Source: Hyphochytrium catenoides (Eukaryota > Protista > Hyphochytriomycota). From it: a stretch of 64,000 nucleotides of DNA. How positions within the stretch are numbered: the first letter of the stretch is position 1; each line of letters opens with the position of its first letter. Where the stretch lies: NCBI GenBank assembly GCA_900088475.1, contig FLMG01000369.1:1-64000 (forward strand), read 5' to 3'. The notes beneath the pieces were generated by a model that saw only the letters and a program-made list of their open reading frames with translations, made no database searches and had not been told where the DNA came from. Positions 959 to 59,788 of the stretch are shown here, piece by piece. A program made the position numbers and the translations under genes.

Positions 959-3900
959 ATGTACCGTCTGGTTCCACCAAGGACCGGAGTCCGAGCTCTA
1001 ACTGCTGCTGGTAAAGTGAAGAATGGCGCTTCGCTCCTGCGGCGCTCGGCGTCTCCCTCTCTTTCCAAAAGTCATGCTCGTCGTTCTCTCTCTTTCTCCC
1101 GCCTCCCTCCGGCGACTGGGCTCTACAGTCCCAAGGAAGAGAGAGAGAACTGTGGCGTGGGAATGATTGCACATCTAAAGAGAAAGCCTTCCCGAGCCAT
1201 CGTGGAAGAGGCAGATATGATGCTGGTCCGCATGTCACACAGAGGAGGGACTGGCTGTGACCCTTGCTCTGGTGATGGAGCAGGTAAGAGCACCTCCCGC
1301 CTCTCTCTCTCTTTGTCTCTCTCTCTCTGTCTCTCTCTCGCATCTTCTTCCGTGTCTATGGAGTACCTCCTCGTTTCCTATGGCCCGTTGGCTTGTCTCC
1401 TCTCTTTCTGCCTGCTTGTCATGAGTGGCCGGTGCTGGTTAGTCTTAAGCCTCTTCAAAAGCCGTGATACCTTCTCTGCCTCTATCTCTTTCTCTCTCTC
1501 CTTTCTCTCTCGCAGTTCCTCTTCGTCATCTCTCTTACCTGTATGCCTGTCTCACCCTTTCCCCGTCTCCAGGCATGTTGGTCACTCTCCCTCACGAGTT
1601 CCTTCAGAAGGTGGCCAAGCAGGACATCGGCATCACTCTTCCTTCTCCTGGCGCCTTTGGAGTCGGTAACGTCTTCTTCCCTAAGAGTGACCAGGCAGTA
1701 GAAGAGGGCAAGGCAGTCTTTGAGGCCGTCGCGAAGCGTTACGGGCTGTCGGTCCTGGGCTGGCGCCGTCTTCCTACAAATAACTCCGTCCTTGGCGAGA
1801 GCTCTAAAGCGTCCGAGCCCTTTGTAGAGCAGGTCTTCGTCGAGAACAGCAGAGGACTTAGTGAGCAGGACTTCGAGAGAGAGCTCTTCTTGATTAGACG
1901 GGTAGGAGATGTGTCGATGTGTCTGTCTCCGTCTGTCAACTGGAGTTCGGCCTCCGTGTCTCTGGGAGGTCTTAAGTTGCTTGTCCACTGCTTCTTCAAT
2001 TCCTTCTTTGGTCCTTAGCTTCCCATGTCTGTCATCACTCTCGCACGGGCGGAGGTCCCGTATGGGTGGCCCTCTCTCTCTTTGCAGTGCTGCTTGCCTA
2101 GGCCCTGGCTCCCTTTTCCTCTCTTCTCACCCTTTTCTTCCCCGTTTGAATATTAGGTGGCACAGAACGAATGTATGGAGAGTGCAGCCGCGAAAGAGAT
2201 GTACATGTGCAGTCTCTCTTGCAAGACTATCACCTACAAGGGACAGCTGACTCCCGAACAGGTGAGAGGGAGCTACCCTGCTGGCCTTTAGTGCCATTGT
2301 ACGCTTTTTTCCCTTCTTTCTCTGTTTTTGCTATCCGAGGGGTGCACTTCTCCGCGCAGCGCTTCATGGGTGGACTGACTCGCAGCAACCTCTCTCTCTC
2401 TCTCTCTCTTCTATAGGTCTCGCAGTATTATCTAGACTTGCAGGATCCCATGTTCTCGTGCTACGTGGCACTGGTCCACTCCCGGTTCTCCACCAACACA
2501 TTCCCTTCTTGGGACAGGGCTCAGCCCAACCGCATCATGTGCCACAATGGAGAGATCAACACGCTGAGAGGCAACAAGAACTGGATGTTCTCTAGAGGAG
2601 CGCTGCTGGAAAGCGAATACTTTGGCGATGAGACACAGCGTTTCCTGCCTGTTTGTTCGGATAATATGAGCGACTCAGGGAACTTTGACTCTGTGCTGGA
2701 GCTCATTGTCAAGGTGCGAAGGGGGCGAGGAAAGACGATGATAAGGCAATAGGTTTGTCCTTTAGCTCTCGGATAGGCGACGCGCGAGAGAGGAATATTG
2801 TGGGAGCTGTGGGAGCTGCAGAAGAGAAAGAGATAGAAAGAAGTTCTTGCTTTTGCCAGAGGGAGAAAGAGAGAAAGGAGAGAAAGAAAGAGCGAAAGTT
2901 TCTGACAAGAACCACCGACAGGCATCGGACCGTACCCTTCCTGAGGCTATGATGATGATGATTCCCGAGGCATGGCAGAACCACCAACATATGGATGATG
3001 ACATCAAGGCGATGTATGAGTATAACTCCTGCATGATGGAGCCATGGGATGGACCTGCAATGATGGCTTTCACGGATGGTGAGTCCTCCTCTTTCCCTTC
3101 CTGGTTCGCATGTTCGCCTCCCTGTTTTTCTTGAGGTCTGCCCGCAGTTGACCGGACTTTCTCCCTCTCTTGCTCTCTCTCTACTATCTGGACCTTCCTC
3201 CTGACTGCGCAGGCAACTACATTGGAGCTACACTGGACCGGAACGGACTCCGCCCTTCTCGTTACTATGTAACCCATGACGACCATGTCATCCTTTCCTC
3301 CGAGGTCGGCGTTTTGCCAGAGTTGGAGGAGAGCAAAATCAAGATCAAGCATAGGCTAGAGCCAGGTACGCACAACAGAGAGAGAGTGTAAGAGAGAGAG
3401 AAGAAAGAGAAACGAGAGGGAGAATTAAACAAGAAAAGAAGACTCTTCCGTTGACTAAGTTCGCTGGCCACTTAGGTAAAATGTTCCTTGTGGACTTCGT
3501 GAAGGGAGAGATTGTCAACGATGCGGTCGTAAAGAAGGAGACGGCAACCTCACGGCCCTTCGTCGAATGGCGGAAGAACCTTACGCGCCTCTCTGACTGG
3601 GTGGAGCACGCTAAGGGTGGGAAGAAAGGCAAGGCTGCCCTCGCAGAGAGCTCACTTGTTGAGAAAAGAGGATACCTTGAGCAGGTCAGAGGCCCCTTCT
3701 TTTGCCTGAAACTCTTCTTATCCTGGCTCTATGCTGTCCTCTTCTTTTCCCTTTTGCCCCATCAGTGACACACCTTTGGAGGCTCTAGTCTCTCTCTCTC
3801 TCTCTCTCTCTCTCCACCATCTCTATAGCAACTGTCTCTAAGGAAAGACGTCTGTCTCTCTCTCTTGGCACCGCTTTCTGCCACTGCCGCCGTTGCCTTT

Positions 3901-15725: not shown

Positions 15726-21569
<5,844 letters not shown>

Positions 21570-34733: not shown

Positions 34734-35705
34734 ATGAAGGGCGAGACAATGAAGAAAACAAGCACCAGAAAGCGAAGAATGGCCACTAGATGCTGGAAAC
34801 CTCGCTCTTCCTTCTTGCTTTTGCTCTTTTTCGCTCTCTCTCTATCCTCTCGTCATCTTCTTAGAAGTGCACAAGCTGCCTTGCGAGCCTCTCCTCCCAA
34901 CGCCCGACGAGCTCCACTGAACGCTCTTACTACTGAGCCGAAGCAATTTGTAAAAACGAAGCCTGAGGCTGCTTCACTCCTGAGGAGAGTTCCGGAGGAC
35001 CGCTCCGCCGGACAGGAGCAGAGTTCTCATCAGCTCTTGGAAGAGGCGAGCAATAGAGTTGTCTTGACAGCAAAAAACGCTGTTGAGGCGTTAAAAGTGT
35101 TGGCAGACATGAAGAAACAGTTCCGAGAGTCGAAGGGTGTCAAGAATCTAATCGCATGGAAGCGGGCGGTTGACAACGTAGCGGAAGTACGTCGTGAGTA
35201 CGAAGCCGACGTGGCCAAATGGAAACGTGTTAGGGATCGGCTACCCTCGGAGCAGAGGAAACAAGTTACGGAGGAGCTGGCTGGCAGAATGACAGGAATT
35301 CTTTCACGCCTGAGAACTACGATAGACATCGAGTCTGGGGAAATTTCAAGTCACAGTGCAAACCTCCTCCGCGTTGCTTGGCATGGCGTTGTCACGAGAA
35401 GAACGGCTCTTATTAGCGCCTCAACACGCTCCACACAGAAGAAGAGGCAGCACCAAACGTCGAAGCGTCAGGAAGATAAAATTGCATGGGAACGGGCAGC
35501 CGAAGAAAAAGCTGAGGCCTTGAAGGAATACAATGCCGCTATGAAGCGCTGGAAAATTCTTAATGACCGGCTATTCTCGCAGAGGAAGGTGGAGAATAAC
35601 AACAGAAGGCTTAACGGCATCAGTGAGACTAACAGAATTATGAAAGCATTGATAAACTTGGACTACAGTCGAATAGGAGAAGATTGGAGCACTTTAACGC
35701 CATAG
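34734..35705 (+). CDS. Intronless predicted secreted helical-repeat protein, subfamily A (323 aa, probably C-terminally truncated)
   Basis: Basic leader STRKRR, hydrophobic FLLLLFFALSL, AQA cleavage-like site, and two ~110-aa repeats (AWKRAV…EYEA / AWERAA…EYNA). Paralogous to 38400..39674 at protein and DNA level in the leader. Confidence 0.75.
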   Translation: MKGETMKKTSTRKRRMATRCWKPRSSFLLLLFFALSLSSRHLLRSAQAALRASPPNARRAPLNALTTEPKQFVKTKPEAASLLRRVPEDRSAGQEQSSHQLLEEASNRVVLTAKNAVEALKVLADMKKQFRESKGVKNLIAWKRAVDNVAEVRREYEADVAKWKRVRDRLPSEQRKQVTEELAGRMTGILSRLRTTIDIESGEISSHSANLLRVAWHGVVTRRTALISASTRSTQKKRQHQTSKRQEDKIAWERAAEEKAEALKEYNAAMKRWKILNDRLFSQRKVENNNRRLNGISETNRIMKALINLDYSRIGEDWSTLTP

Positions 35706-38399: not shown

Positions 38400-39674
38400 A
38401 TGGCGTATCATAACGGAGAAGACGATAGAAGAATCAGAAAGGGAAGAGTTACGTTTAATTGGCGAAAACCTTGCCCTTCCCTTTTGCTTTTGCTCTTTCT
38501 TGCTCTCTCTCTCTCCCTTTTCGTCTCCCGGAATGCAGAAGCTACTCGTTCCTCTCGACTCCCAACAGGAGGTATTCACAGCAGCCCCAAAGTCCCGAAG
38601 GAGCCTGCAGCCGGTAAACGTTGGAGCACTCAAGGAATAGACTCTGTAGGAAAGAAGCTGTCACAGGCCCCAAAGGCATTTCTGGCATTTCTGCGCACTC
38701 TTAAATCCAACAGAGAGCGCTCTCGGGCCATCAAAAGTGCCTGGGATGACCTTAACGAGAAAGGGTGGTCATCTCTAAGGACTTTAGAACTATTAGAAGA
38801 GAAGAAGGGACAGTTTTCACAGTCCAAAGGTAAATATGAGCTAAGAGAATGGAAAGAGGCAGCCAGGAGAGCAGAAACAGCAGTTCAAGAATATGAGAAT
38901 GCCGCGAACACCTTTAGAAGCCTTACTGAGCCGCTACCATCGAAGAAGAGAGAGGCTGTTGCTGACATGGCTGGTATTCTCAACAATATTGGGGAATGGA
39001 GAGCTAGGATTGAGAAACACAATAGTGAGATCTTAAAAAGCTCCGAGGAGGAGGTTGCCCGGAACTGGAATGACCTTAGCGAGAAAGAGCACGCTGCCAC
39101 CGTTGCCTTGAGGAATGCGGAAGAGAAATATGTGCGTCAAGATGCAGAGCAGATGAGTCTGGAGGAGCTAGAAGTATGGAAGAGGGCACTAGACGGAGTA
39201 AGAAAGGCACTCAAGGACTATGAGGAAGCCGCGAATGCCTTGAAAGGCCTCGGTGATCTGCTGCCCTCGCAGAAGAAGGCCGTCGTCGAAGACAATGCCT
39301 TCATGGCTATCGAGAATATTAAAATATGGAGGGCAAAGATAGAAGCAGATCATTGGCAAGCCTCAAGGTTCATCGCTGTCCTCAGATGGAAGCCCTATAC
39401 TGAGGCTCGGACAGCGGTTGACGACGCAGTGAATTTTGCGGTTGAGAAGGCGGAACAGGCGTTAACAACAACAAAAAGTCCAGAGAAGCTCACAGAGTGG
39501 AGTGAGGCATACAAGAAAGCCATGGATGCACTAAAGGCCTATGAAAGAGCCGGACAAAAGCTCAACGACGAGCTTGCTCCTGAAATGGCTCCACCGTCGA
39601 TGGCCGAAGTAAAGTCCAACGTCGAGGTTGCCTTCGGAAGACTCAACGGGTTGCAACTTCAGATAGAGCTATGA
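38400..39674 (+). CDS. Intronless predicted secreted helical-repeat protein, subfamily A (424 aa, three ~108-aa repeats)
   Basis: Long open frame with leader RIRKGR…KPCPSLLLLLFLALSLSLF…AEA. Repeat anchors at W115/W223/W330, W151/W260/W367 and Y165/Y274/Y381. Confidence 0.85.
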   Translation: MAYHNGEDDRRIRKGRVTFNWRKPCPSLLLLLFLALSLSLFVSRNAEATRSSRLPTGGIHSSPKVPKEPAAGKRWSTQGIDSVGKKLSQAPKAFLAFLRTLKSNRERSRAIKSAWDDLNEKGWSSLRTLELLEEKKGQFSQSKGKYELREWKEAARRAETAVQEYENAANTFRSLTEPLPSKKREAVADMAGILNNIGEWRARIEKHNSEILKSSEEEVARNWNDLSEKEHAATVALRNAEEKYVRQDAEQMSLEELEVWKRALDGVRKALKDYEEAANALKGLGDLLPSQKKAVVEDNAFMAIENIKIWRAKIEADHWQASRFIAVLRWKPYTEARTAVDDAVNFAVEKAEQALTTTKSPEKLTEWSEAYKKAMDALKAYERAGQKLNDELAPEMAPPSMAEVKSNVEVAFGRLNGLQLQIEL

Positions 39675-42219: not shown

Positions 42220-42918
42220 TTGTGGCAGGGACACCTTGCTGTTAGTACTATGACTCTGAGCTCAGCGCCGATGACCTCCAGAGGACCACGGAAGCAGAGT
42301 GTTCAAAGGGCTGGGCAGCTCTTCTTACGGCGGCGCTGCTTTTCCTATTCCTTCCTCCATCTTCTCTTTGTCGTCTCTCTTTTCTCTCTTCTAGGGCTGG
42401 AAAGTAGCGAAGCTTTGGGATTTCCGCGAGTTTCGAAGGTGAAGGCCACCTTGACAAAGAGCTTGAGTTCACTGAAGCACAACGGCGAAGCGTGGCTCTA
42501 TCGGAAGGGAATTAAGAAGCCAAAGATACCGGCCGGGACACAACTCTACGATAACGTGCTATCCGATGGGCTGTGGAAAAAGGCTAAGGACGGCCTTGAG
42601 GAGGCGGATTCTTTGATGACTACCTCAGAACAGGCTGCGAAAGAGACACTCAGAAACGTGAGGTCTAAACTGCGAGCCACGAAGACCGATCTGAACAAAG
42701 CATTCGAGGAAGCGATAGCAGGCATAAAAGCGACGTCCCGTGAAGACAGACAGCTGCAGATTGCCCAGATCAATCACAGATACGATATCCTCAATAAGAA
42801 GCATAAGGATCTACAGAGTAGGTTGATATTCTACCAGCGCCTTGAACTTGGGAGGAAATTCGGACTAGTTCCCGGGTCGGATGGCGCAAACTTAAGAGGC
42901 GCGAACATGCGTGAATAA
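42220..42918 (+). CDS. Intronless predicted secreted helical protein, subfamily B (likely ATG start at 42249 or 42270)
   Basis: RRRCF leader, hydrophobic FLHLLFVVSLFSLLGL, SSEA cleavage-like site, Lys-rich amphipathic segment and coiled-coil body. Clear paralog at 45041-45713. Confidence 0.8.
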   Translation: MWQGHLAVSTMTLSSAPMTSRGPRKQSVQRAGQLFLRRRCFSYSFLHLLFVVSLFSLLGLESSEALGFPRVSKVKATLTKSLSSLKHNGEAWLYRKGIKKPKIPAGTQLYDNVLSDGLWKKAKDGLEEADSLMTTSEQAAKETLRNVRSKLRATKTDLNKAFEEAIAGIKATSREDRQLQIAQINHRYDILNKKHKDLQSRLIFYQRLELGRKFGLVPGSDGANLRGANMRE

Positions 42919-46700: not shown

Positions 46701-47731
46701 GAGTAGTAGTAGAAAGACCAGTAAATCTGCTAAATTAATACAATCGAAAAGAAGCCTGCCAACAACAAAACTAACAGACTCAAGGCTCTCCCGTTGGGAA
46801 GAAGGCCTCAAACGGCTTCGCTGGACTTGTTTGTTTTGGTTAGTCCTTCATTGTCGTTGATGTTATCTTCTTATGTTACTTCCTGAGCAAACAGTAGTGA
46901 TGTAGCAGTAGTAGTAGTGTAGATCATGGTCATGGTTCTGGTTAGTCTAGTGCATGGTTCAACACTGCTTCTAAGTAGAAAGCATGTTTATTATTGTCAT
47001 TCATGGACCCTGAAGAACCTTCCGAATGGCGAGAGGATTCTTCTGCTTCGCTTCCATGGACCGCCCGTGTGAATAGAACTACTCGGGTTCTGGGACGTGG
47101 TCAACAGCGTGGTCTACAGAGACTCCGAGCCAGGGAGAGTCCGTGCAGCTCTTTCCTAAGAATAGAACAAAAGGGAAAGGGGCTACCTGGGGCCTTGTTT
47201 GCCTCGTTCTCTGATATCCTGGTCTAACCTGGATACTAAACTTGATAAGTAGTTTGCGGTGAGAGAGGAGAGGAAACTGAGAGCCAGCGACCTAGCTGAG
47301 GAGGAATGCAACTGCACACGGATGGCTGGACACCGGGAACACTACTGCTAGATAGCGCGATGCGATGGACAGCGGAGACTCGACGAAGAAAGAGATGGAG
47401 AAAGAGAGAGAGACCGATAGCTGCTAGAATCCTCATCTGGTACAGAAGAGAGGGAGTAGAAAGTGAGAGGAGACAGAACAGTGGGACGGAGACTCATAGA
47501 AAGAGAGACATTTGGGGCCACAAAGAGCAAAATGAAAGAGACCTGCTGTCCAACCTGAACGAACGCGGCGTATATTCTCTACGACGCATTGTCGATTAGG
47601 AGCCGGCTCCTAGCCAGTGAAGGAGGACGGAGCCAAGCGGCCACTACTCCATCAGAAACGCCCCTTCTGAGACTTCAGAAGTGAAGGACACGACAATAGG
47701 GGATTCTCTCCTACTCATTTCGTCCTAGACT

Positions 47732-49132
47732 ATGGAGTGGCAAGGTCCAAAAAGGATGTCGACGAGGAAGAGACGTGGACGAAGTGTCGCACGACATGGA
47801 CAGAGGAGATGTTGCTCTCCTACCCTTCCTCCTCTTCTCTCCTCTCTTCTCATTTTCCTCTGCCTCTTCGCTCTTCTCCTGCTTAGAAGCACGGAAGTAT
47901 ATGGCATGCGGAAATCTCTTTCTCCGACCCGAGAAGGAGGCGCCAGAGCAGAGCCAGGTACCACCACAACCGCGACAATAACTAGAGCTGGCTCATTAGC
48001 AAGGGCGAAGAGTCCGAGAAGAAAGGCTGTCGGACCAGAAACTGTTCCCCTAAGAGTTGAACCGACGGTTGACGAGACAATAGCTCTCCTGGAAACGAAG
48101 GGAAACGAGGCTCAACGCTCACCAAACCCAGAGACGTTCAGGGACTGGGGTGAGGCGATTGGGAACGCTGCACAACGGCTTAGTAGTACGGAGAGCAGGC
48201 TTCCAGAGACAACGATTGACGAACTTAGGGCCAAGATTGAAGCGCAGGCAGAGGGATTTTTATCCATGTCAACTGCGAGGATAGAGCTCGCCAAGATAAC
48301 CGATGGACAGATCCTGGCATGGCTAAGAGCCGTCCCAGATTCATGGCCCGATATAGCTTGGAACGACCTTTTAGCCTGGGAGAAGTCTCTTCAGAGTGCG
48401 TACATGGAGCTAGCGGACGCTAAGACAGCGTTGAATGAGCTCGCAGCGACGGTACGGATCTTCCTACGAGAGGATGTGAAGGGTAGTCGGGGACTATCCT
48501 CGAGGATCACATCAGCCACGAACAGAGTGACCCAGGTTCAGACTGGGTTAAGAAGGACCGCCATTGGGATCTTAGGACTATCAATGATGGCACTCTTCCG
48601 AATAGAGCAGGGGGCCAAGCAGTCGATGACTCGTCTGCAAGCGCAGATGGCACTGGTGCGGAACTCTGCTAGCGCTTCGGAGGCGACGATGAGGGACCTG
48701 GAGACCGCCTTCGAAGCGGCGTACGCAGAGCTGATCAGGGCCAAGACGAGCTTAGCTACCTTTACCGAGATGACAGGCACAACGCCGTGGAAGGAGCTCT
48801 ACCACCAGCACCATCAAACCTGGAGGATAGGAGTAGTCAGGAACAACATTGGCCATATGGAAAAGGAAATACGAGCGACAGCACTTGGAATCCTAAGGAT
48901 TGCACGGGAGTTCGCTGAGGTGAACGAAGGAGCAGTGCTGGAAGCTATGACCCTGGGAGAACAGAATAGGGCACAGCCTGCACAGATGCTGAGAGCGGAC
49001 ACGCATGATGAACCGAAGGCAAAGGATCTGGCAATGTCAAGCCTCCAGATGGTCACAACTATCTTGCAAAGGATGACAGAGCGCATAAGAGAGAGATTTT
49101 TGCCGGCAACCAGCGTGATCAGTTCAAGGTAG
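47732..49132 (+). CDS. Intronless predicted secreted helical-repeat protein, divergent subfamily A member (466 aa)
   Basis: STRKRR leader identical to the 34734 protein, hydrophobic LLSSLLIFLCLFALLLL, a T/P/R-rich linker and two 107-aa repeats (AYMELADAKTAL…RRTAIGIL / AYAELIRAKTSL…RATALGIL). Shares RAKIEA with the 38400 protein. Confidence 0.85.
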   Translation: MEWQGPKRMSTRKRRGRSVARHGQRRCCSPTLPPLLSSLLIFLCLFALLLLRSTEVYGMRKSLSPTREGGARAEPGTTTTATITRAGSLARAKSPRRKAVGPETVPLRVEPTVDETIALLETKGNEAQRSPNPETFRDWGEAIGNAAQRLSSTESRLPETTIDELRAKIEAQAEGFLSMSTARIELAKITDGQILAWLRAVPDSWPDIAWNDLLAWEKSLQSAYMELADAKTALNELAATVRIFLREDVKGSRGLSSRITSATNRVTQVQTGLRRTAIGILGLSMMALFRIEQGAKQSMTRLQAQMALVRNSASASEATMRDLETAFEAAYAELIRAKTSLATFTEMTGTTPWKELYHQHHQTWRIGVVRNNIGHMEKEIRATALGILRIAREFAEVNEGAVLEAMTLGEQNRAQPAQMLRADTHDEPKAKDLAMSSLQMVTTILQRMTERIRERFLPATSVISSR

Positions 49133-49310: not shown

Positions 49311-51929
49311 CTAGTGGATCAGATAGGCTAGGCCGATACGCTGTCCTCCTCTCTCGTCTCCACCTCGTCGATGCGCGGAAGAGGAGATAGGAGGCACCTC
49401 AGAACGTGGAGCAGGAAGAGGGTGAGTGTATGAAGAGCGAGAAAGAGAAGCCACAGAGAGAGGCGCAAGGATAAGCCAGCCCATGAAGATGGCCAAGGAG
49501 CAGATGTATGGGATAGGAATCCCTAGCGCCAAACGGAGCAAGAGGAGAGAGAGAACGATAAGCGGAGGAAGCAGGGCACAAGCGAGAGCTAGCACGTGCT
49601 TTCCTCTCTTCTTCAATAAAACCAACGGGTCTCTTTCTCTCGCTTCCGCCGGCCTGCTCTCTCTGCTGCGGCCTTCTCTACGACTGAGAAAGGCTCCGAT
49701 TCTGTCGTTGCCTAGCTCTCTCCTCTCTCCTTCAAACACCGCTGAGAGCATATGCCGAAAGGCCCGTGCGACTTTTGAAAGGTAGAGAAGAAGAACAGAG
49801 GAGAGAGGAGAGAAGACGACCCACCAAGGCAGAGAGTGATCCTCCATGTCCATCTTATAGACCAACAGAGCAGAGGATAGAAGGACAGACAGAGCAGGTG
49901 CAACCACCTTCATTTGCTGTTGCAATGAGACAAAAGAGAGATGAGAGAAAAGATGCATGGCCAAGCCCATGTATGTCCAGAGAGGGATGCAGGTGACACA
50001 GAGAGAAGAGAGAAGCCCGTCCAGATACATCGACAGAAGAAGAGGAAAGATGTCTACCAGTCCGCAGACCACCGCCATGAACACGATTTCTATAGGAAAC
50101 TCTCTGTTCCAAAAGAAGATACGAAAGAGCTGTGACGAAGAAAAGAATCTCTCTCTTCTTCCGTTCCTCTCTCTCTCTCTGTCGCTGGTTGACAGGCCAC
50201 CAGCAGAGGAAGGCCGAGCGAAGAGAAGGAGGTAGATTGCCACTGCTCCTTTGACGGCAGCAAAAGCCAGGGGCATGAGAAGGACCGAATGAAAGGGAGA
50301 GAAAACCATGAACCAAGAGAGAGAGACATCTCCGTCCAGTTTGAGGCAGAGAAGAACTGGGAAGAGTATGACCATTGCAGAGAGGGAGAGACACGCAGAG
50401 AAGCCCACAAAAGCATCCAATGTCCTCTTGTTCCAACAGCGAAGTACTCTTCCTTTCTTTGCTCTTTCAAGTCTCTCGTCTCTCTCTCTCCTCTCAGCCT
50501 CCAGACTCAAGAGCTCCTCTCTGCATCTTCTGTCTGCTTCTTTCGCTGCGATGTAGAAACGAAGACCATCTGATAGAGAGAGAGAAGGATTGAGGCGGCG
50601 CAGATGGTGCTGGTGCAGGAGCGAGAGAGAAGAAAACTCCGTTATGTTGAGAAAGTTCCATAGTGAGTCCATTTTGGAGAGACTTCTTAGGCGCCTGGGC
50701 AAGGAGAAGAGAAAGAGGAGTGTTATTCAGAGGATCAGAGACAAGAGGGGAGAGAGAGAGTAAAGTAGAGAGAGAGCCGGACAGAGAGAGAGAGAAAGAG
50801 AGAGAGAGAGATTGAAAGAAGAAGAGATGAATTGAGAGAGATTGTGACGAAGGAGGACTGGGGACAGAGAGCTGGAGAGGCCAAAAGAAAGAGGGAGAGC
50901 AATAAGAAAGAGGAGAGAGGTTGAGAGGGTGATGACGAGAGAGCAGAAAAGCGGGGGGAGAGAGAGAGCGCTTGGGTGCAACAAGGGAGAAAAGAAAGAG
51001 GCCTGCGCGTTATCATCCAGACCCGACGGCGTTCCTTTGACTCACCTGGACACAGCACCGGTTCTAGCGACAGTAGGACCATCCAAGCTCCTCAGGATTT
51101 CCAGCAGAAGATCTTCGGAGAGAGAGGTGAGCCTGTCAGGTTTGGAGAGAGAGGCTTCCTCTTTCTTGCTGTGCATCTCTCTTCCTTTCTTCTTCTCCTC
51201 CAAAAGAAAGTCTTTGGATGGAGAGGTGAGCCTGTCACCTATGGAGAGAGAGGTTTCCTCTATCCTATTACTCTCTTTCTCTCTTCCTTTCTTATCTTGG
51301 ACCCAGATTGTCTCTTCAGCGGCAGCGCAACTTGAAAGGAGAACTTCTCGTGTCATCTCCCGTCTCACAATGCGCTCTTTCTCTCTCTTTCCTTCTTCTG
51401 TTGACGAGATGGTGGAGGCAGCCTCTTCTTCCATTGTTGGCTCCTCGCTTTGGAAGCGCTGGACGAACGTAGATATCTCTTTCTTTTTGTCTTCCTCCGT
51501 GGTTTCTGGGGCCTGTTCTAGATGTCTTCCTTCTACCTTCTCAGTACGATGATGCGGGCAAACAGAGTGTTCTGGTTCTCTTTCTCTCTCTTCTCCTTCT
51601 CTCTTCCTTCTTTGGTCTCTCATCAGCTTATACTGCTCTCTCTTTCCTCTCTCTCTCTCATCTCTCCTTCCTCCCCGTCTTTCCAGTACGGTTCCCGTCC
51701 TCTTTTCACCTTCTCGAAGCGAAGAATGCTCTCCTGCACCTTTTAACGGACAGAAGCGAGAGAAGGGAGGCGGCAGGAGGGAAAACCGTAGAGAAGAGAG
51801 AGAGAGAGAAGCGAGAGAAGAGACCCGCAGCGATCGTCTCTCGGGCCTGCAGGAAAGCTTATTGGAGGTTGCGTTTCTCTCTCCCACTCTTAGTGTTTCT
51901 CCTCTCTCTCTCTCTCTCTCTCGTCCCAT
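49311..51929 (-). CDS. F-box protein with a multi-pass TMEM185/TMEM203-like membrane domain (2 exons; start codon uncertain)
   Basis: LTSLSEDLLLEILRSLDGPTVARTGAVSR spliced (intron 51045-50695) to RLRSLSKMDSLW gives a complete F-box. Repeated LLCLKLDG-x4-W-x2-VFSP / LLVYKMD-x6-WWVVFSPL motifs are typical of TMEM185-like proteins. Confidence 0.8.
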
Positions 51930-53893: not shown

Positions 53894-55708
53894 CTATTCT
53901 TCTCCACTCTCCTGCTTGCGTAGCAGTCTTCTCGTCGTCGTTCCCCCTGCAGGACTTATGATATCTGGATTTTGCTTGATAAACTCTGAGATGTCGATGG
54001 CGCCAAGGTCGGCTCCTGCATCATCCACTCCGCTGCTATCGCCAGCTAGAGGATCACCACCGAAGTTCAAGCCGACCACAGACAAAGCGACAACTGTGAG
54101 TCCCGCTAGCAGCAACCCCGTAACTCCTGCGCCAATCAAGCCCGCCCGTAATGGCGTCAGCCACAGTCTCTTCAGCCTGTTTGCCTGTTTTTCCAGCAGA
54201 CTGAGCACTGCTAGATTGCCTCGAGCATAGGTGATGGCATCAGTGGCGTCTTGAAATCCTTGGTAAGTCTTTTGTAAATTCTCTAGAGCGGGGTTATCCG
54301 TAATCTTTCCGTCCAGTTGCTGTTTCTCCTGGTTGAGCTTAGACTCATAGTCGACCTTCAGCCTTTGCTGTATGGCTTCCTCAGTCTTGGCAGATAAGGC
54401 CTTTTTAATCATGCGTTTGAGTGTAATGTCCACGCCACGTGCGGATGATAGTCGCTTCTGCGCCTTACGCATCTCCTTGCGTACATTTGCTGTCCACTCT
54501 TTTGGATTGACATCTCCCTCTGCACCGCGGCTGGTCATCGCCGTCAAGTCTTTCACAGCCTGCCTGTAACCCTCCAGTGCAGAATAGTCCCTCCCCACGC
54601 GATCATCTTTGTTAGCTTGTTCCTTGGTTAGTCCATTTAAGAAGTCCTTAAAGCTGTTCACGTTGTGTTGGTCCGCCTGAGGAAGATGATTTAACGTACT
54701 GGGATCCTTGGCTTTGCTGCGTTCCACATGCCCCACGAGTGCAGCCACCATCGGATCATCTAGTTCCCACTGAGCTTGTTTCAGACGGGCATCCACAGAA
54801 CTCAGCTTTCTGTCGTAACCTCTGATCGTGGTAAGAAGCTTCATGAATTGGTCGTAGACATCCTTGCCAATCTCTTTGCGCAACTTTTGCACCTCTGAAA
54901 GAAACCGCACTTGTTCTTTACGGGCAATCGTAATAACGTCCTCATCTGCCTTCTTCGCTCCCTTAAGGGCTTTCTCGGCTCTGGTCTTTGCATTCGCCTC
55001 TTTCCCTGGAATGGCTGCCCCAGCAGCTAACTCTTCCTTCAAGCTTACAGAGAGTCCGTCTGTGAGCGGATGGCTGTTCGCACTTTGCAGTGGTACATCG
55101 TTCGGAACATCGGCTGCTGAAATCTCCCCGCCCTCATCGGATCGAGCTAGAGAAGAAGAGATGGTAGCTTCCTCAGCTACTTGTGGAGCCACAGGAGAAG
55201 CGGAAGTTTCACCAGAGGATGGTGGGGACTCTTTGGTTTGAGTTGTTGACTTCTTCTTGAGAAATGTTCCGAAGCTGTGAAGCACCTGAGACAACCTGAG
55301 GCTGCCAGCGTCCATAACTCGGGACACCAAAGAACCCTTTGACCTTGCAGTTCTCCATTGTTCCTCAAGGTATGCGTTATGAGCTAATTTTGCCCTAGTC
55401 ATCTCGTCTTTGGCCAGCTGTACTGCGTCGGCTAAGCTGTGAGGTTTATCATGCGCCTTGTGCCAGAATTTTAGCTTCGGGGTCCACTTCCGTAGCCCCA
55501 ACCATTTCCTTCCACCCGCCTCAGCTTGATGGTTTCGACCCAGGTGGCTGTTGGCTGGATCAGCTGCCGATTTACCTCCTTTTTTACTAAAAAATCCTGC
55601 CCTTGCCCCTGGAAGAAGAGGGATAGTACATAGAAGGAACAAGAGACAACAGGCTAAAACCGGAAGAGAGAGCCAGGGATGACGCTTCCTGAAGACAGGA
55701 AGAGCCAT
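53894..55708 (-). CDS. Intronless signal-peptide, coiled-coil protein with a C-terminal hydrophobic segment, subfamily C (604 aa)
   Basis: RKRHPW leader, LPVLACCLLFLLCTIPLL, ARA site, long K/E/A/L helical region, Gly-rich hydrophobic AGLIGAGVTGLLLAGLTVVALSVVG, and tail GAIDISEFIKQNPD…RRLLRKQESGEE. Confidence 0.88.
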   Translation of the reverse strand: MALPVFRKRHPWLSLPVLACCLLFLLCTIPLLPGARAGFFSKKGGKSAADPANSHLGRNHQAEAGGRKWLGLRKWTPKLKFWHKAHDKPHSLADAVQLAKDEMTRAKLAHNAYLEEQWRTARSKGSLVSRVMDAGSLRLSQVLHSFGTFLKKKSTTQTKESPPSSGETSASPVAPQVAEEATISSSLARSDEGGEISAADVPNDVPLQSANSHPLTDGLSVSLKEELAAGAAIPGKEANAKTRAEKALKGAKKADEDVITIARKEQVRFLSEVQKLRKEIGKDVYDQFMKLLTTIRGYDRKLSSVDARLKQAQWELDDPMVAALVGHVERSKAKDPSTLNHLPQADQHNVNSFKDFLNGLTKEQANKDDRVGRDYSALEGYRQAVKDLTAMTSRGAEGDVNPKEWTANVRKEMRKAQKRLSSARGVDITLKRMIKKALSAKTEEAIQQRLKVDYESKLNQEKQQLDGKITDNPALENLQKTYQGFQDATDAITYARGNLAVLSLLEKQANRLKRLWLTPLRAGLIGAGVTGLLLAGLTVVALSVVGLNFGGDPLAGDSSGVDDAGADLGAIDISEFIKQNPDIISPAGGTTTRRLLRKQESGEE

Positions 55709-58600: not shown

Positions 58601-59788
58601 TTATCGGAGTCGTCTTCTACTTTTCAAACCTCCGCTGGTAGGGGCCGTTAATAAGTCTGGGTTCGCCCGGAGTAACTCGGTAATGTCAATGACGCCTCCT
58701 TTATTCCCATCGGCACCCTCTTGCTGCTCACCCGTGGCATCAGGGGAGGGAAGCGTTGCACCGCTATAATTGGGTCCAAGCACCATGCCCACGGACATGA
58801 TGGCAAGCAAAGTTCCAATGGTCAGGCCTCCAACCAAGGTATACTTTAGTTTTGGCCACCACGGTCTTGTCAAACTGACCATCCGCTTCACTTCTAACTT
58901 GGCATTTGCCACTGCATCTGACGCTTTCTTGATACGCTCCCTAGCGGCAGCCACCTCGTTCATTAGTTCGCGCATGTCTTTATATTGTTCACCGTNNNNN
59001 NNNNNNNNNNNNNNNNNNNNNNNNNNNNNNNNNNNNNNNNNNNNNNNNNCTCGTTGCTTAAGAAGGTCTCGGTACCCCTTCGACAGGGCCGGGTCAATCT
59101 TCTTGAACTTCTTGTTGACGCTTTCGACTAAGTCTTGGGCAATTTTAAACTGATGGTTTGCTGCTTGGAGCAGAGTCCTCGTGAGACGCCTCGCCTCGCT
59201 TCCCTGAGCCCGAACGCTCTTTTGCGCTTTCTCAATCTTTATGGCTTCAGTCTCCAACTGCTCTGGCATCAATTGTTCTTCCGGCAACCGCGACACTTCA
59301 GATGCTGCGTCTGGAGCGGGACTTCGCTTGTTCTCCCCTTCTAGCCATCGAAGGTATGCGGCGTATATCTTTTTCAACAGCGGTGTCTCCTTGTTTCGTC
59401 TCCAAAAGTCTGCAATCTCCTGGTTCTTGGCTTCCTCAGCGCTTCTGAACTTACTCGCTGCGGTTATTGAGGAACCGAATAATTCTTGCGTCTTTTGTTC
59501 CGCTTCGTCGAGGGACTTCACAATGTCAACGTCTGAATCCTCAGAGCGACGTTGCTTAATGTTCAACCGGTGGGACACTCGACTGAAAGCTTTCCGAGGG
59601 CCATTGACAAAAGTGTCAGTCAAGAGTTTCTTGGCGCTAAACTTAGGCTTGACAGAGGCGGCCTTGACAGGGGCTGCTGTTGCTTGCGACAGCAACGTGA
59701 TCCCAATCAAGAAAAGAGCAAGAACAAGGAGAAAATGCCATCGCCTTCTCGGGCTGGCGTATAGTCTGTCTGCCGCCTTTCGAGCCAT
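58601..59788 (-). CDS. Intronless signal-peptide, coiled-coil protein with a C-terminal hydrophobic segment, subfamily C (~395 aa; N gap 58996-59049)
   Basis: PRRRWH leader, FLLVLALFLIGITLL, ATA site, coiled-coil body, LVGGLTIGTLLAIMSVGMVLG, and tail GVIDITELLRANPD…KSRRRLR*. The tail aligns with the 53894 protein. Frame continuity across the gap is assumed. Confidence 0.8.
   Translation of the reverse strand: MARKAADRLYASPRRRWHFLLVLALFLIGITLLSQATAAPVKAASVKPKFSAKKLLTDTFVNGPRKAFSRVSHRLNIKQRRSEDSDVDIVKSLDEAEQKTQELFGSSITAASKFRSAEEAKNQEIADFWRRNKETPLLKKIYAAYLRWLEGENKRSPAPDAASEVSRLPEEQLMPEQLETEAIKIEKAQKSVRAQGSEARRLTRTLLQAANHQFKIAQDLVESVNKKFKKIDPALSKGYRDLLKQRXXXXXXXXXXXXXXXXXXXGEQYKDMRELMNEVAAARERIKKASDAVANAKLEVKRMVSLTRPWWPKLKYTLVGGLTIGTLLAIMSVGMVLGPNYSGATLPSPDATGEQQEGADGNKGGVIDITELLRANPDLLTAPTSGGLKSRRRLR

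Follow-up and report, generated by a model that had tools for sequence, protein, structure and literature searches.

A leader-bearing tandem gene family with a repeated, predicted helical module of about 108 residues in a contig of Hyphochytrium catenoides

We analysed a stretch of 64,000 nucleotides (positions 1 to 64,000 of contig FLMG01000369.1, assembly GCA_900088475.1, deposited as Hyphochytrium catenoides; referred to as the window), for which an original prediction had described a Trp/Tyr-anchored helical repeat shared by three genes. Our data establish that this repeat is present in two of them, here called A and B, and that A and B are paralogues. The repeat, the paralogy, a leader architecture shared by the encoded proteins and the lack of detectable relatives are all directly observed. 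The best explanation, to which we assign a probability of roughly 60%, is a lineage-restricted family of four paralogous genes (A, B, C and F), whose products combine a leader, a basic linker and one to three all-helical modules of about 108 residues in a spectrin-like rod.

The four genes follow each other on one strand (+) in the order B (34734), A (38400), F (42250) and C (47732). The open reading frames (ORFs) of A, B and C are complete, from ATG to stop codon. The features are:

34734..35705, plus strand: gene B, 323 amino acids (aa), with basic N-terminus, hydrophobic leader, basic linker and two repeat units
35019..35348, plus strand: unit B1, residues 96-205, with a self-inclusive domain score of 141 bits against the unit profile
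35349..35702, plus strand: unit B2, residues 206-323, paired with B1 at z 12.7
38400..39674, plus strand: gene A, 424 aa, with leader, disordered basic linker and three repeat units; contains 38742-39576, where the repeat had been predicted
38712..39035, plus strand: unit A1, residues 105-212, predicted helices 105-142, 148-176 and 181 onward
39036..39359, plus strand: unit A2, residues 213-320, first predicted helix carried over from A1 (181-243), then 254-285 and 290 onward
39360..39671, plus strand: unit A3, residues 321-424, first predicted helix carried over from A2 (290-356), then 361-391 and 400-423
42250..42918, plus strand: gene F, 222 aa, with a leader of the same type and roughly one helical unit; groups with C
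47732..49132, plus strand: gene C, 466 aa, with leader, basic linker, a short helical unit resembling that of A/B, a 107-aa duplication of its own and a helical tail
48044..48286, plus strand: shortened unit of C, residues 105-185, weak match to the A/B profile, contains PETFRDWGEA and RAKIEA
48302..48943, plus strand: internal duplication of C, residues 191-297 and 298-404, with Y224/Y331, z 8.6 and 24% identity

The Repeat in Genes A and B

All pairs of units were compared by Smith-Waterman alignment, and each score was set against 300 shuffles per pair. The value of z was highest for A1-A2 (16.5), A1-B1 (13.0) and B1-B2 (12.7), followed by A3-B2 (9.5), A2-B1 (9.2), A2-B2 (8.7), A1-A3 (6.2), A1-B2 (6.0) and A2-A3 (5.9). 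In nine of the ten pairs not one of the 300 shuffles reached the observed score, and A3-B1 was the sole pair without significance (z 1.7). A and B also matched each other by tblastn within the window, with E values of 1.7e-10 and 2.6e-6. Comparison of the loci as DNA showed no similarity other than microsatellites and a stretch of 88 nt with 76% identity in the leader region of A and B.

In the alignment of the five units, pairwise identity is 17-34%, with invariant W, A, Y, L and I columns, and the repeat period is 107-110 residues. The conserved hydrophobic columns are spaced 3-4 residues apart and form three blocks, which are split by polar gaps containing Gly and Pro. The residues named in the original prediction were located correctly (W115/223/330, W151/260/367 and Y165/274/381 in A, W142/252 and Y156/266 in B, Y224/331 in C), and the distance from W to Y is 14 residues in all five A/B units. 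The predicted consensus elements L-x2-W-x2-A, EY-x2-A and LPS agree with the majority consensus of our alignment. A variable copy number had also been proposed and is found among the paralogues, with three units in A, two in B and apparently one in F.

Predicted Structure of the Module

Structures of A and C were predicted with AlphaFold2 from the single sequence, and the models were compared with the PDB by Foldseek. The model of A had a predicted local distance difference test score (pLDDT) of 74.9 and a predicted template modelling score (pTM) of 0.51, and pLDDT was 80-90 across the units. Helices were modelled at residues 105-142, 148-176, 181-243, 254-285, 290-356, 361-391 and 400-423, that is, three per unit. 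Two of them, 181-243 and 290-356, extend over a unit boundary (212/213 and 320/321, respectively), and the loops coincide with the conserved motifs SK(G) and LPS (or PEMAPPS). The model thus argues for a discrete helical module and not for a featureless coiled coil.

According to this model, the A/B module would be an antiparallel three-helix bundle, the core of which would be set by the 3-4 (heptad-like) pattern of hydrophobic residues. In the second helix, two heptads separate the invariant W from the invariant Y, which places both on the same face, where they may form one core-facing stripe, while SK(G) and LPS would make up the two loops. Since the third helix of one module passes without interruption into the first of the following one, a semi-rigid rod of modules joined end to end is expected as in spectrin, where such a rod measures roughly 5 nm per unit. 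For residues 105-424 of A the model would predict a highly helical, monomeric rod about 15 nm long. The rod of stacked helical bundles put forward in the original prediction is in agreement with the three-helix units and continuous linking helices in the model of A, and it retains the status of a prediction: serial three-helix bundles joined by continuous helices are what is predicted.

Among the 20 top-ranked Foldseek matches of A, tandem spectrin repeats were the only ones with a root mean square deviation (rmsd) below 12 Å. The repeats SR5-6 of plectin were matched with probability 0.98, E 0.11, a template modelling (TM) score of 0.38 and rmsd 9.8 Å (5j1h_A), and with probability 0.97 (5j1f_B), the E values of this plectin pair being 0.11-0.13 at an rmsd of about 10 Å. 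Nesprin-2G (6xf1_C) followed with probability 0.84 and E 0.29. Matches to PaxB, XaxB and AhlB/C (components of alpha-pore-forming toxins), to 14-3-3 and to designed helical repeats had rmsd values of 20-80 Å and were discarded as meaningless global alignments of long helices. The model of C had a pLDDT of 60.6, and only its residues 105-185 were confident (pLDDT 80-88, three shorter helices).

Search for Relatives

Whole proteins A, B and C were scanned against Pfam by hmmscan (E up to 1), and nothing above any cutoff was found. When the five units were scanned singly (E up to 10), no family was matched by more than one unit, and no model for spectrin, the tetratricopeptide repeat (TPR), WY or PHIST appeared. 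No existing Pfam repeat was matched with confidence, which leaves intact the novelty that the original prediction had proposed. Sequence searches of the PDB with the unit profile, A, C and the neighbour gene D gave nothing meaningful, and no spectrin-family chain was returned for the unit profile.

The profile of the five A/B units was searched against the window and, with HMMER, against 1.84 billion representative public proteins. Beyond A and B it returned a weak match to C and nine public proteins, most of which share a short TPR-type motif. Eight of the nine were scanned with Pfam, and seven of these are TPR proteins and one has OEP/Uso1 matches; five carry the name 'tetratricopeptide repeat protein' in their source, and the ninth, which was not scanned, has no name. 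In six of the nine the best stretch spans about 25-30 profile positions (roughly 50-78), covering the AL-x-EY-x2-A helix and the following L-P, and the same short motif recurs 5-9 times per protein. The dominance of TPR proteins among the database matches is thus explained by a short TPR-like motif in the second helix, and because the matching stretch is so short we rejected the nine proteins as homologues and regard the resemblance as one of motifs.

Further searches were based on shared words, for A, C and a membrane protein ORF of the window; the 8000 candidates sharing most words were scored, a procedure in which hydrophobic or low-complexity leaders may crowd out relatives. With this restriction, no relative of A was found. 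By exact look-up neither A nor B is on the public protein record, and a literature search found no description of such a family. Because no Pfam repeat, PDB sequence or public protein matches the A/B units, it is fair to speak of a new sequence family, a possibility that had been raised in the original prediction; what is new is the sequence, the architecture being of a kind already known.

The sole true relative came from the word search with gene C, a copy of which (98% identical) is present on a 3.5-kb Logan contig (L001, run SRR28521185). It differs from C by 10 nonsynonymous and 5 synonymous changes (pN/pS about 0.64, based on few sites). L001 carries the same membrane protein gene (49311-50702 in the window) next to C, so that this order is common to a second isolate. 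Upstream of C, identity between L001:276-602 and window positions 47009-47322 falls from about 98% to 78% with many gaps; this stretch is locally divergent or rearranged intergenic DNA between the isolates.

Genes C and F

For C the original prediction had postulated two units of period 107 carrying the same anchor residues. The duplication itself was confirmed (residues 191-297 versus 298-404, period 107, z 8.6, 24% identity), but the duplicated parts could not be matched to the W/Y unit of A and B. In comparisons with the A/B units every pairwise z was below 4 (Smith-Waterman) and the hhalign probability was 1.7-2.1%. In the best local registers the tyrosine of C lies 7 or 8 residues past the position of the A/B tryptophan, versus 14 in A and B. 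On account of the hhalign value of about 2%, z below 4 and the offset of 7 or 8 residues, a shared Trp/Tyr anchor in C is not demonstrated, and a repeat common to three genes is upheld for A and B and not for the duplicated units of C. Comparison of a profile of the A/B units with profiles of the C units and of the C plus F units was likewise not significant.

Another part of C does resemble the unit, if weakly. When 1004 six-frame ORFs of the window were searched with the unit profile, residues 113-185 of C gave the best non-self match (E 0.076), a score reached by 1 of 2000 shuffles of C, global or local. Profile positions 21-57 and 93-104 match residues 114-150 and 162-173 of C in collinear order. 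The two motifs that had been noticed in both proteins, RAKIEA (A311, C166) and PE-x3-[DE]W-x-EA (A361, C133), are indeed present in both, and in C both fall within residues 113-185. Sharing of RAKIEA arises by chance in about 1.2% of shuffles. Shortening the A/B profile by one heptad, so as to fit C, changed the score from 10.1 bits to no more than 11.9 bits; this was a post hoc test, and we did not adopt it.

Gene F (42250-42918) was absent from the original prediction. Its leader aligns with that of C at z 8.6 (0 of 2000 shuffles), the leaders of A and B align at z 9.2, and those of B and C at z 4.9 (2 of 2000 shuffles). The helical part of F scores z 6.4 against C2, 4.6 against B1 and 4.0 against A3, and residues 107-157 of F align with residues 282-332 of C without a gap. 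We read this as suggesting that the tandem array is a single family which split long ago into the subgroups {A,B} and {C,F}, and consider it likely that A, B, F and C all share common ancestry. The family would have grown by internal duplication of modules together with tandem duplication of genes.

Leader, Linker and Location of the Proteins

Each protein starts with about 25 basic residues followed by its sole strongly hydrophobic segment, which is N-proximal. The adjoining linker of about 50 residues has a pI of 9.7-11.9 and an S+T+P+G content of 26-41%, with few acidic residues in A and C. The ratio of K+R to D+E in the linker is 12:2 in A, 11:4 in C and 9:7 in B, and in the models the linkers of A and C are of low confidence and free of helices. 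Cys, N-glycosylation sequons and further hydrophobic segments are absent from the mature parts. No R-x-L-R was found in A, B, C or F, and no leader-proximal PEXEL-like or RRL motif; the sole R-x-L-x-[EQD] is at residue 173 of A, inside the repeat.

Ahead of the leader, B and C share STRKRR at residues 10-15 (2 of 5000 shuffles), encoded by different codons in the two genes, and F has TSRGPRK as the counterpart (residues 8-16). A Cys directly precedes the hydrophobic segment in all four proteins. The conservation of a motif at this position suggests that the first ATG is used and that the N-terminus is functional on the cytosolic side, as part of a signal anchor or as a sorting signal.

The leader suggests that the proteins enter the secretory pathway; either in one of its compartments or outside the cell, they may act as an extended scaffold, a spacer or a platform for binding. 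An extracellular location, as put forward in the original prediction, is suggested by the N-proximal hydrophobic leader only. A different destination follows if leader and linker together act as a bipartite signal and transit peptide of the plastid type, as found in apicomplexans, which would put the rods inside an organelle and would concern the location only. A basic, acid-poor linker would suit a transit peptide behind a signal peptide and keeps an organellar destination a live alternative; the charge bias (12:2 in A, 11:4 in C, 9:7 in B), the high pI, the S+T+P+G content and the disorder modelled for the linkers of A and C all fit. The linker of B is far less biased, however, and it is more typical of surface or secreted proteins to form tandem families that diverge rapidly, so that we rate organellar targeting as rather improbable.

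Weighing of the Explanations

Several points speak against the four-gene family with spectrin-like rods. The fold is derived from a single-sequence AlphaFold model, and the comparison of A with the PDB gave no match at E 1e-3 or better and no TM score above 0.38. For C the model is of low quality, with fold matches of a generic kind. Joining the A/B pair to the C/F pair would have to draw on several weak signals, each with p of about 1e-3, and the profile-profile comparison of the two groups was not significant. Finally, the leader could be a signal anchor instead of a signal peptide, and an organelle transit sequence could account for the basic, acid-poor linker, so that the extracellular location is less certain. 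The main structural rival is an inter-chain coiled coil: the units would not fold back on themselves but form a dimeric or trimeric fibre, and the periodicity of 108 aa would stem from duplication only. A heptad-like hydrophobic pattern runs through the whole repeat region, predicted helices reach 63-67 residues, and long helical bundles and coiled-coil proteins are also among the Foldseek matches. Loop motifs rich in Gly, Pro and Ser (SKG, LPS, PEMAPPS) nevertheless break the helices at fixed sites in every unit, and the monomer model of A packs (pTM 0.51, pLDDT 80-90 across units), which makes such a fibre unlikely. If the bundles are as modelled, they could still be very diverged true members of the spectrin-repeat superfamily, alike by descent and not by convergence. 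The period of 107-110 aa, the three helices per unit with a continuous linking helix in the model of A, a Trp near the start of the first helix in four of the five units, and the fact that tandem spectrin repeats are the best superposable PDB matches would all be expected from common descent. No spectrin model was matched at E up to 1 by the whole proteins or up to 10 by the units, though, no spectrin-family chain appeared in the PDB profile search, and the Foldseek E values were 0.11-0.29. Spectrin-family proteins are cytoskeletal and are not known to carry secretory leaders, and three-helix bundles readily arise by convergence. We therefore regard descent from spectrin as quite improbable. 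The likeness to spectrin drawn in the original prediction is borne out by the predicted architecture and not by sequence models or structure search (Foldseek E 0.1 or worse).

The profile search suggested yet another possibility, namely that the unit is a TPR-like repeat. It is in line with the seven TPR proteins among the eight Pfam-scanned matches and with the second helix, where AL-x-EY-x2-A and the L-P after it are similar to the corresponding helix of a TPR. Most of these matches cover just 25-30 profile positions and do so 5-9 times in each protein, the period is 108 residues versus 34-42 in TPRs, the predicted helices are 29-38 residues long, and no Pfam TPR model matches A, B, C or any unit; a TPR-like unit is thus very improbable. 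Even less credit can be given to kinship with the WY/LWY effector modules of oomycetes, to which the original prediction had pointed, or with the PHIST-type Trp-rich helical domains of Plasmodium, although these groups also combine conserved Trp and Tyr in tandem helical units with a secretory leader and a tandem, fast-evolving gene family. Neither family was matched in Pfam at permissive thresholds, and no RxLR, PEXEL-position or RRL motif follows the leader. In the WY fold, W and Y from different helices pack in the core, whereas in A and B the two residues lie in one helix, two heptads apart. The intron-split MCM gene and the TC/GA microsatellites of the window also seem, in our judgement, unlike an oomycete.

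Genomic Setting

The window has about 50% G+C, sparse long ORFs and numerous (TC)n/(GA)n microsatellites. A multi-exon gene for an MCM helicase is located at 15785-19844 on the plus strand; in an exon-by-exon scan, MCM_N, the MCM P-loop domain and the MCM lid domain were found on separate ORF pieces. The splitting of this gene by introns identifies the window as nuclear DNA of an intron-bearing eukaryote. An ORF piece at 959-1666 (plus strand) matches the first 45 positions of the class-II glutamine amidotransferase domain (E 1e-13) and is probably the first coding exon of a gene of the glutamate synthase type. An Rfam scan of the window gave no match. From general knowledge, the style of the microsatellites and the leaders of the proteins seem reminiscent of cyst-forming coccidia.

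Two further secretory-type genes are located on the strand opposite to the array, at 53894-55708 (604 aa) and 58601-59788 (395 aa, including a run of N that is read as X). Each product has a signal peptide and an extended helical region; a transmembrane segment lies near the C-terminus, and the tail DI[ST]E..[KR].NPD is conserved. The two genes are paralogues across their C-terminal 119 residues (E 8e-12). Neither Pfam nor the PDB gave a match for them, and the unit-profile search detected no relation to the A/B unit. The membrane protein gene next to C (49311-50702, minus strand) is a multi-pass ORF with a weak TMEM185-like match (E 0.004, below the cutoff), and the word search gave no relative for it.

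Significance and Comparison with Known Systems

The family is without sequence relatives among about 15 billion public proteins. If the fold prediction holds, it would place a spectrin-type rod in a secretory setting, and it would offer a small, tractable case of how a helical module originates and multiplies, with one, two and three copies in adjacent paralogues. A more far-reaching reading, tentative at best, is that we see an undescribed secreted family of a poorly sampled, possibly coccidian, parasite, in which an independently evolved, spectrin-like rod with a W/Y core is used outside the cytosol (vacuole, cyst wall or surface coat). If so, the secretory pathway would make use of an architecture otherwise known from the cytoskeleton, and, if the organism is a parasite, the proteins would be candidates for secreted structural or host-facing proteins. 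Since protist genomes commonly contain orphan families of secreted helical proteins, and since we see no hint of a particular activity here, the present account is mainly of descriptive value.

Of the known systems, the spectrin repeat (PF00435; rods of spectrin, plakins, nesprins, dystrophin and alpha-actinin) is the closest in predicted architecture. Common to both are units that recur about every 106-108 residues, each with three antiparallel helices (predicted in our case), a last helix continuous with the first helix of the next unit, an aromatic and hydrophobic heptad core and a variable copy number. On the other hand, PF00435 is not matched, the conserved W and Y of A and B are in the second helix, and there are only one to three units. 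In place of domains for binding to the cytoskeleton, the array proteins have a leader of the secretory type and a basic linker, and the Pfam scan of A, B and C found no actin-binding, EF-hand or plakin domain. TPR proteins (TPR_1, TPR_12) share A-L-x-E-Y-x-x-A and L-P with the A/B unit, which differs from them by its three long predicted helices in place of short hairpins.

The WY/LWY modules of oomycetes are similar as tandem Trp/Tyr helical units of a secreted, duplicated family. A and B differ in having no match to that family, no RxLR leader, and W and Y in the same helix. For PHIST/PRESAN of Plasmodium there is no Pfam match either, and the sole R-x-L-x-[EQD] lies inside the repeat of A. 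The last comparison is with the lineage-specific secreted helical proteins of parasitic protists, for example those of the coccidian dense-granule type; the array proteins showed no export motif and no match to a named family. By analogy from general knowledge, the array proteins and these are alike in the long basic N-terminal region before the leader, the Cys-free helical mature part, the tandem paralogues and the restriction of homologues to a narrow lineage, to which the pN/pS of about 0.64 for C between two isolates may be added.
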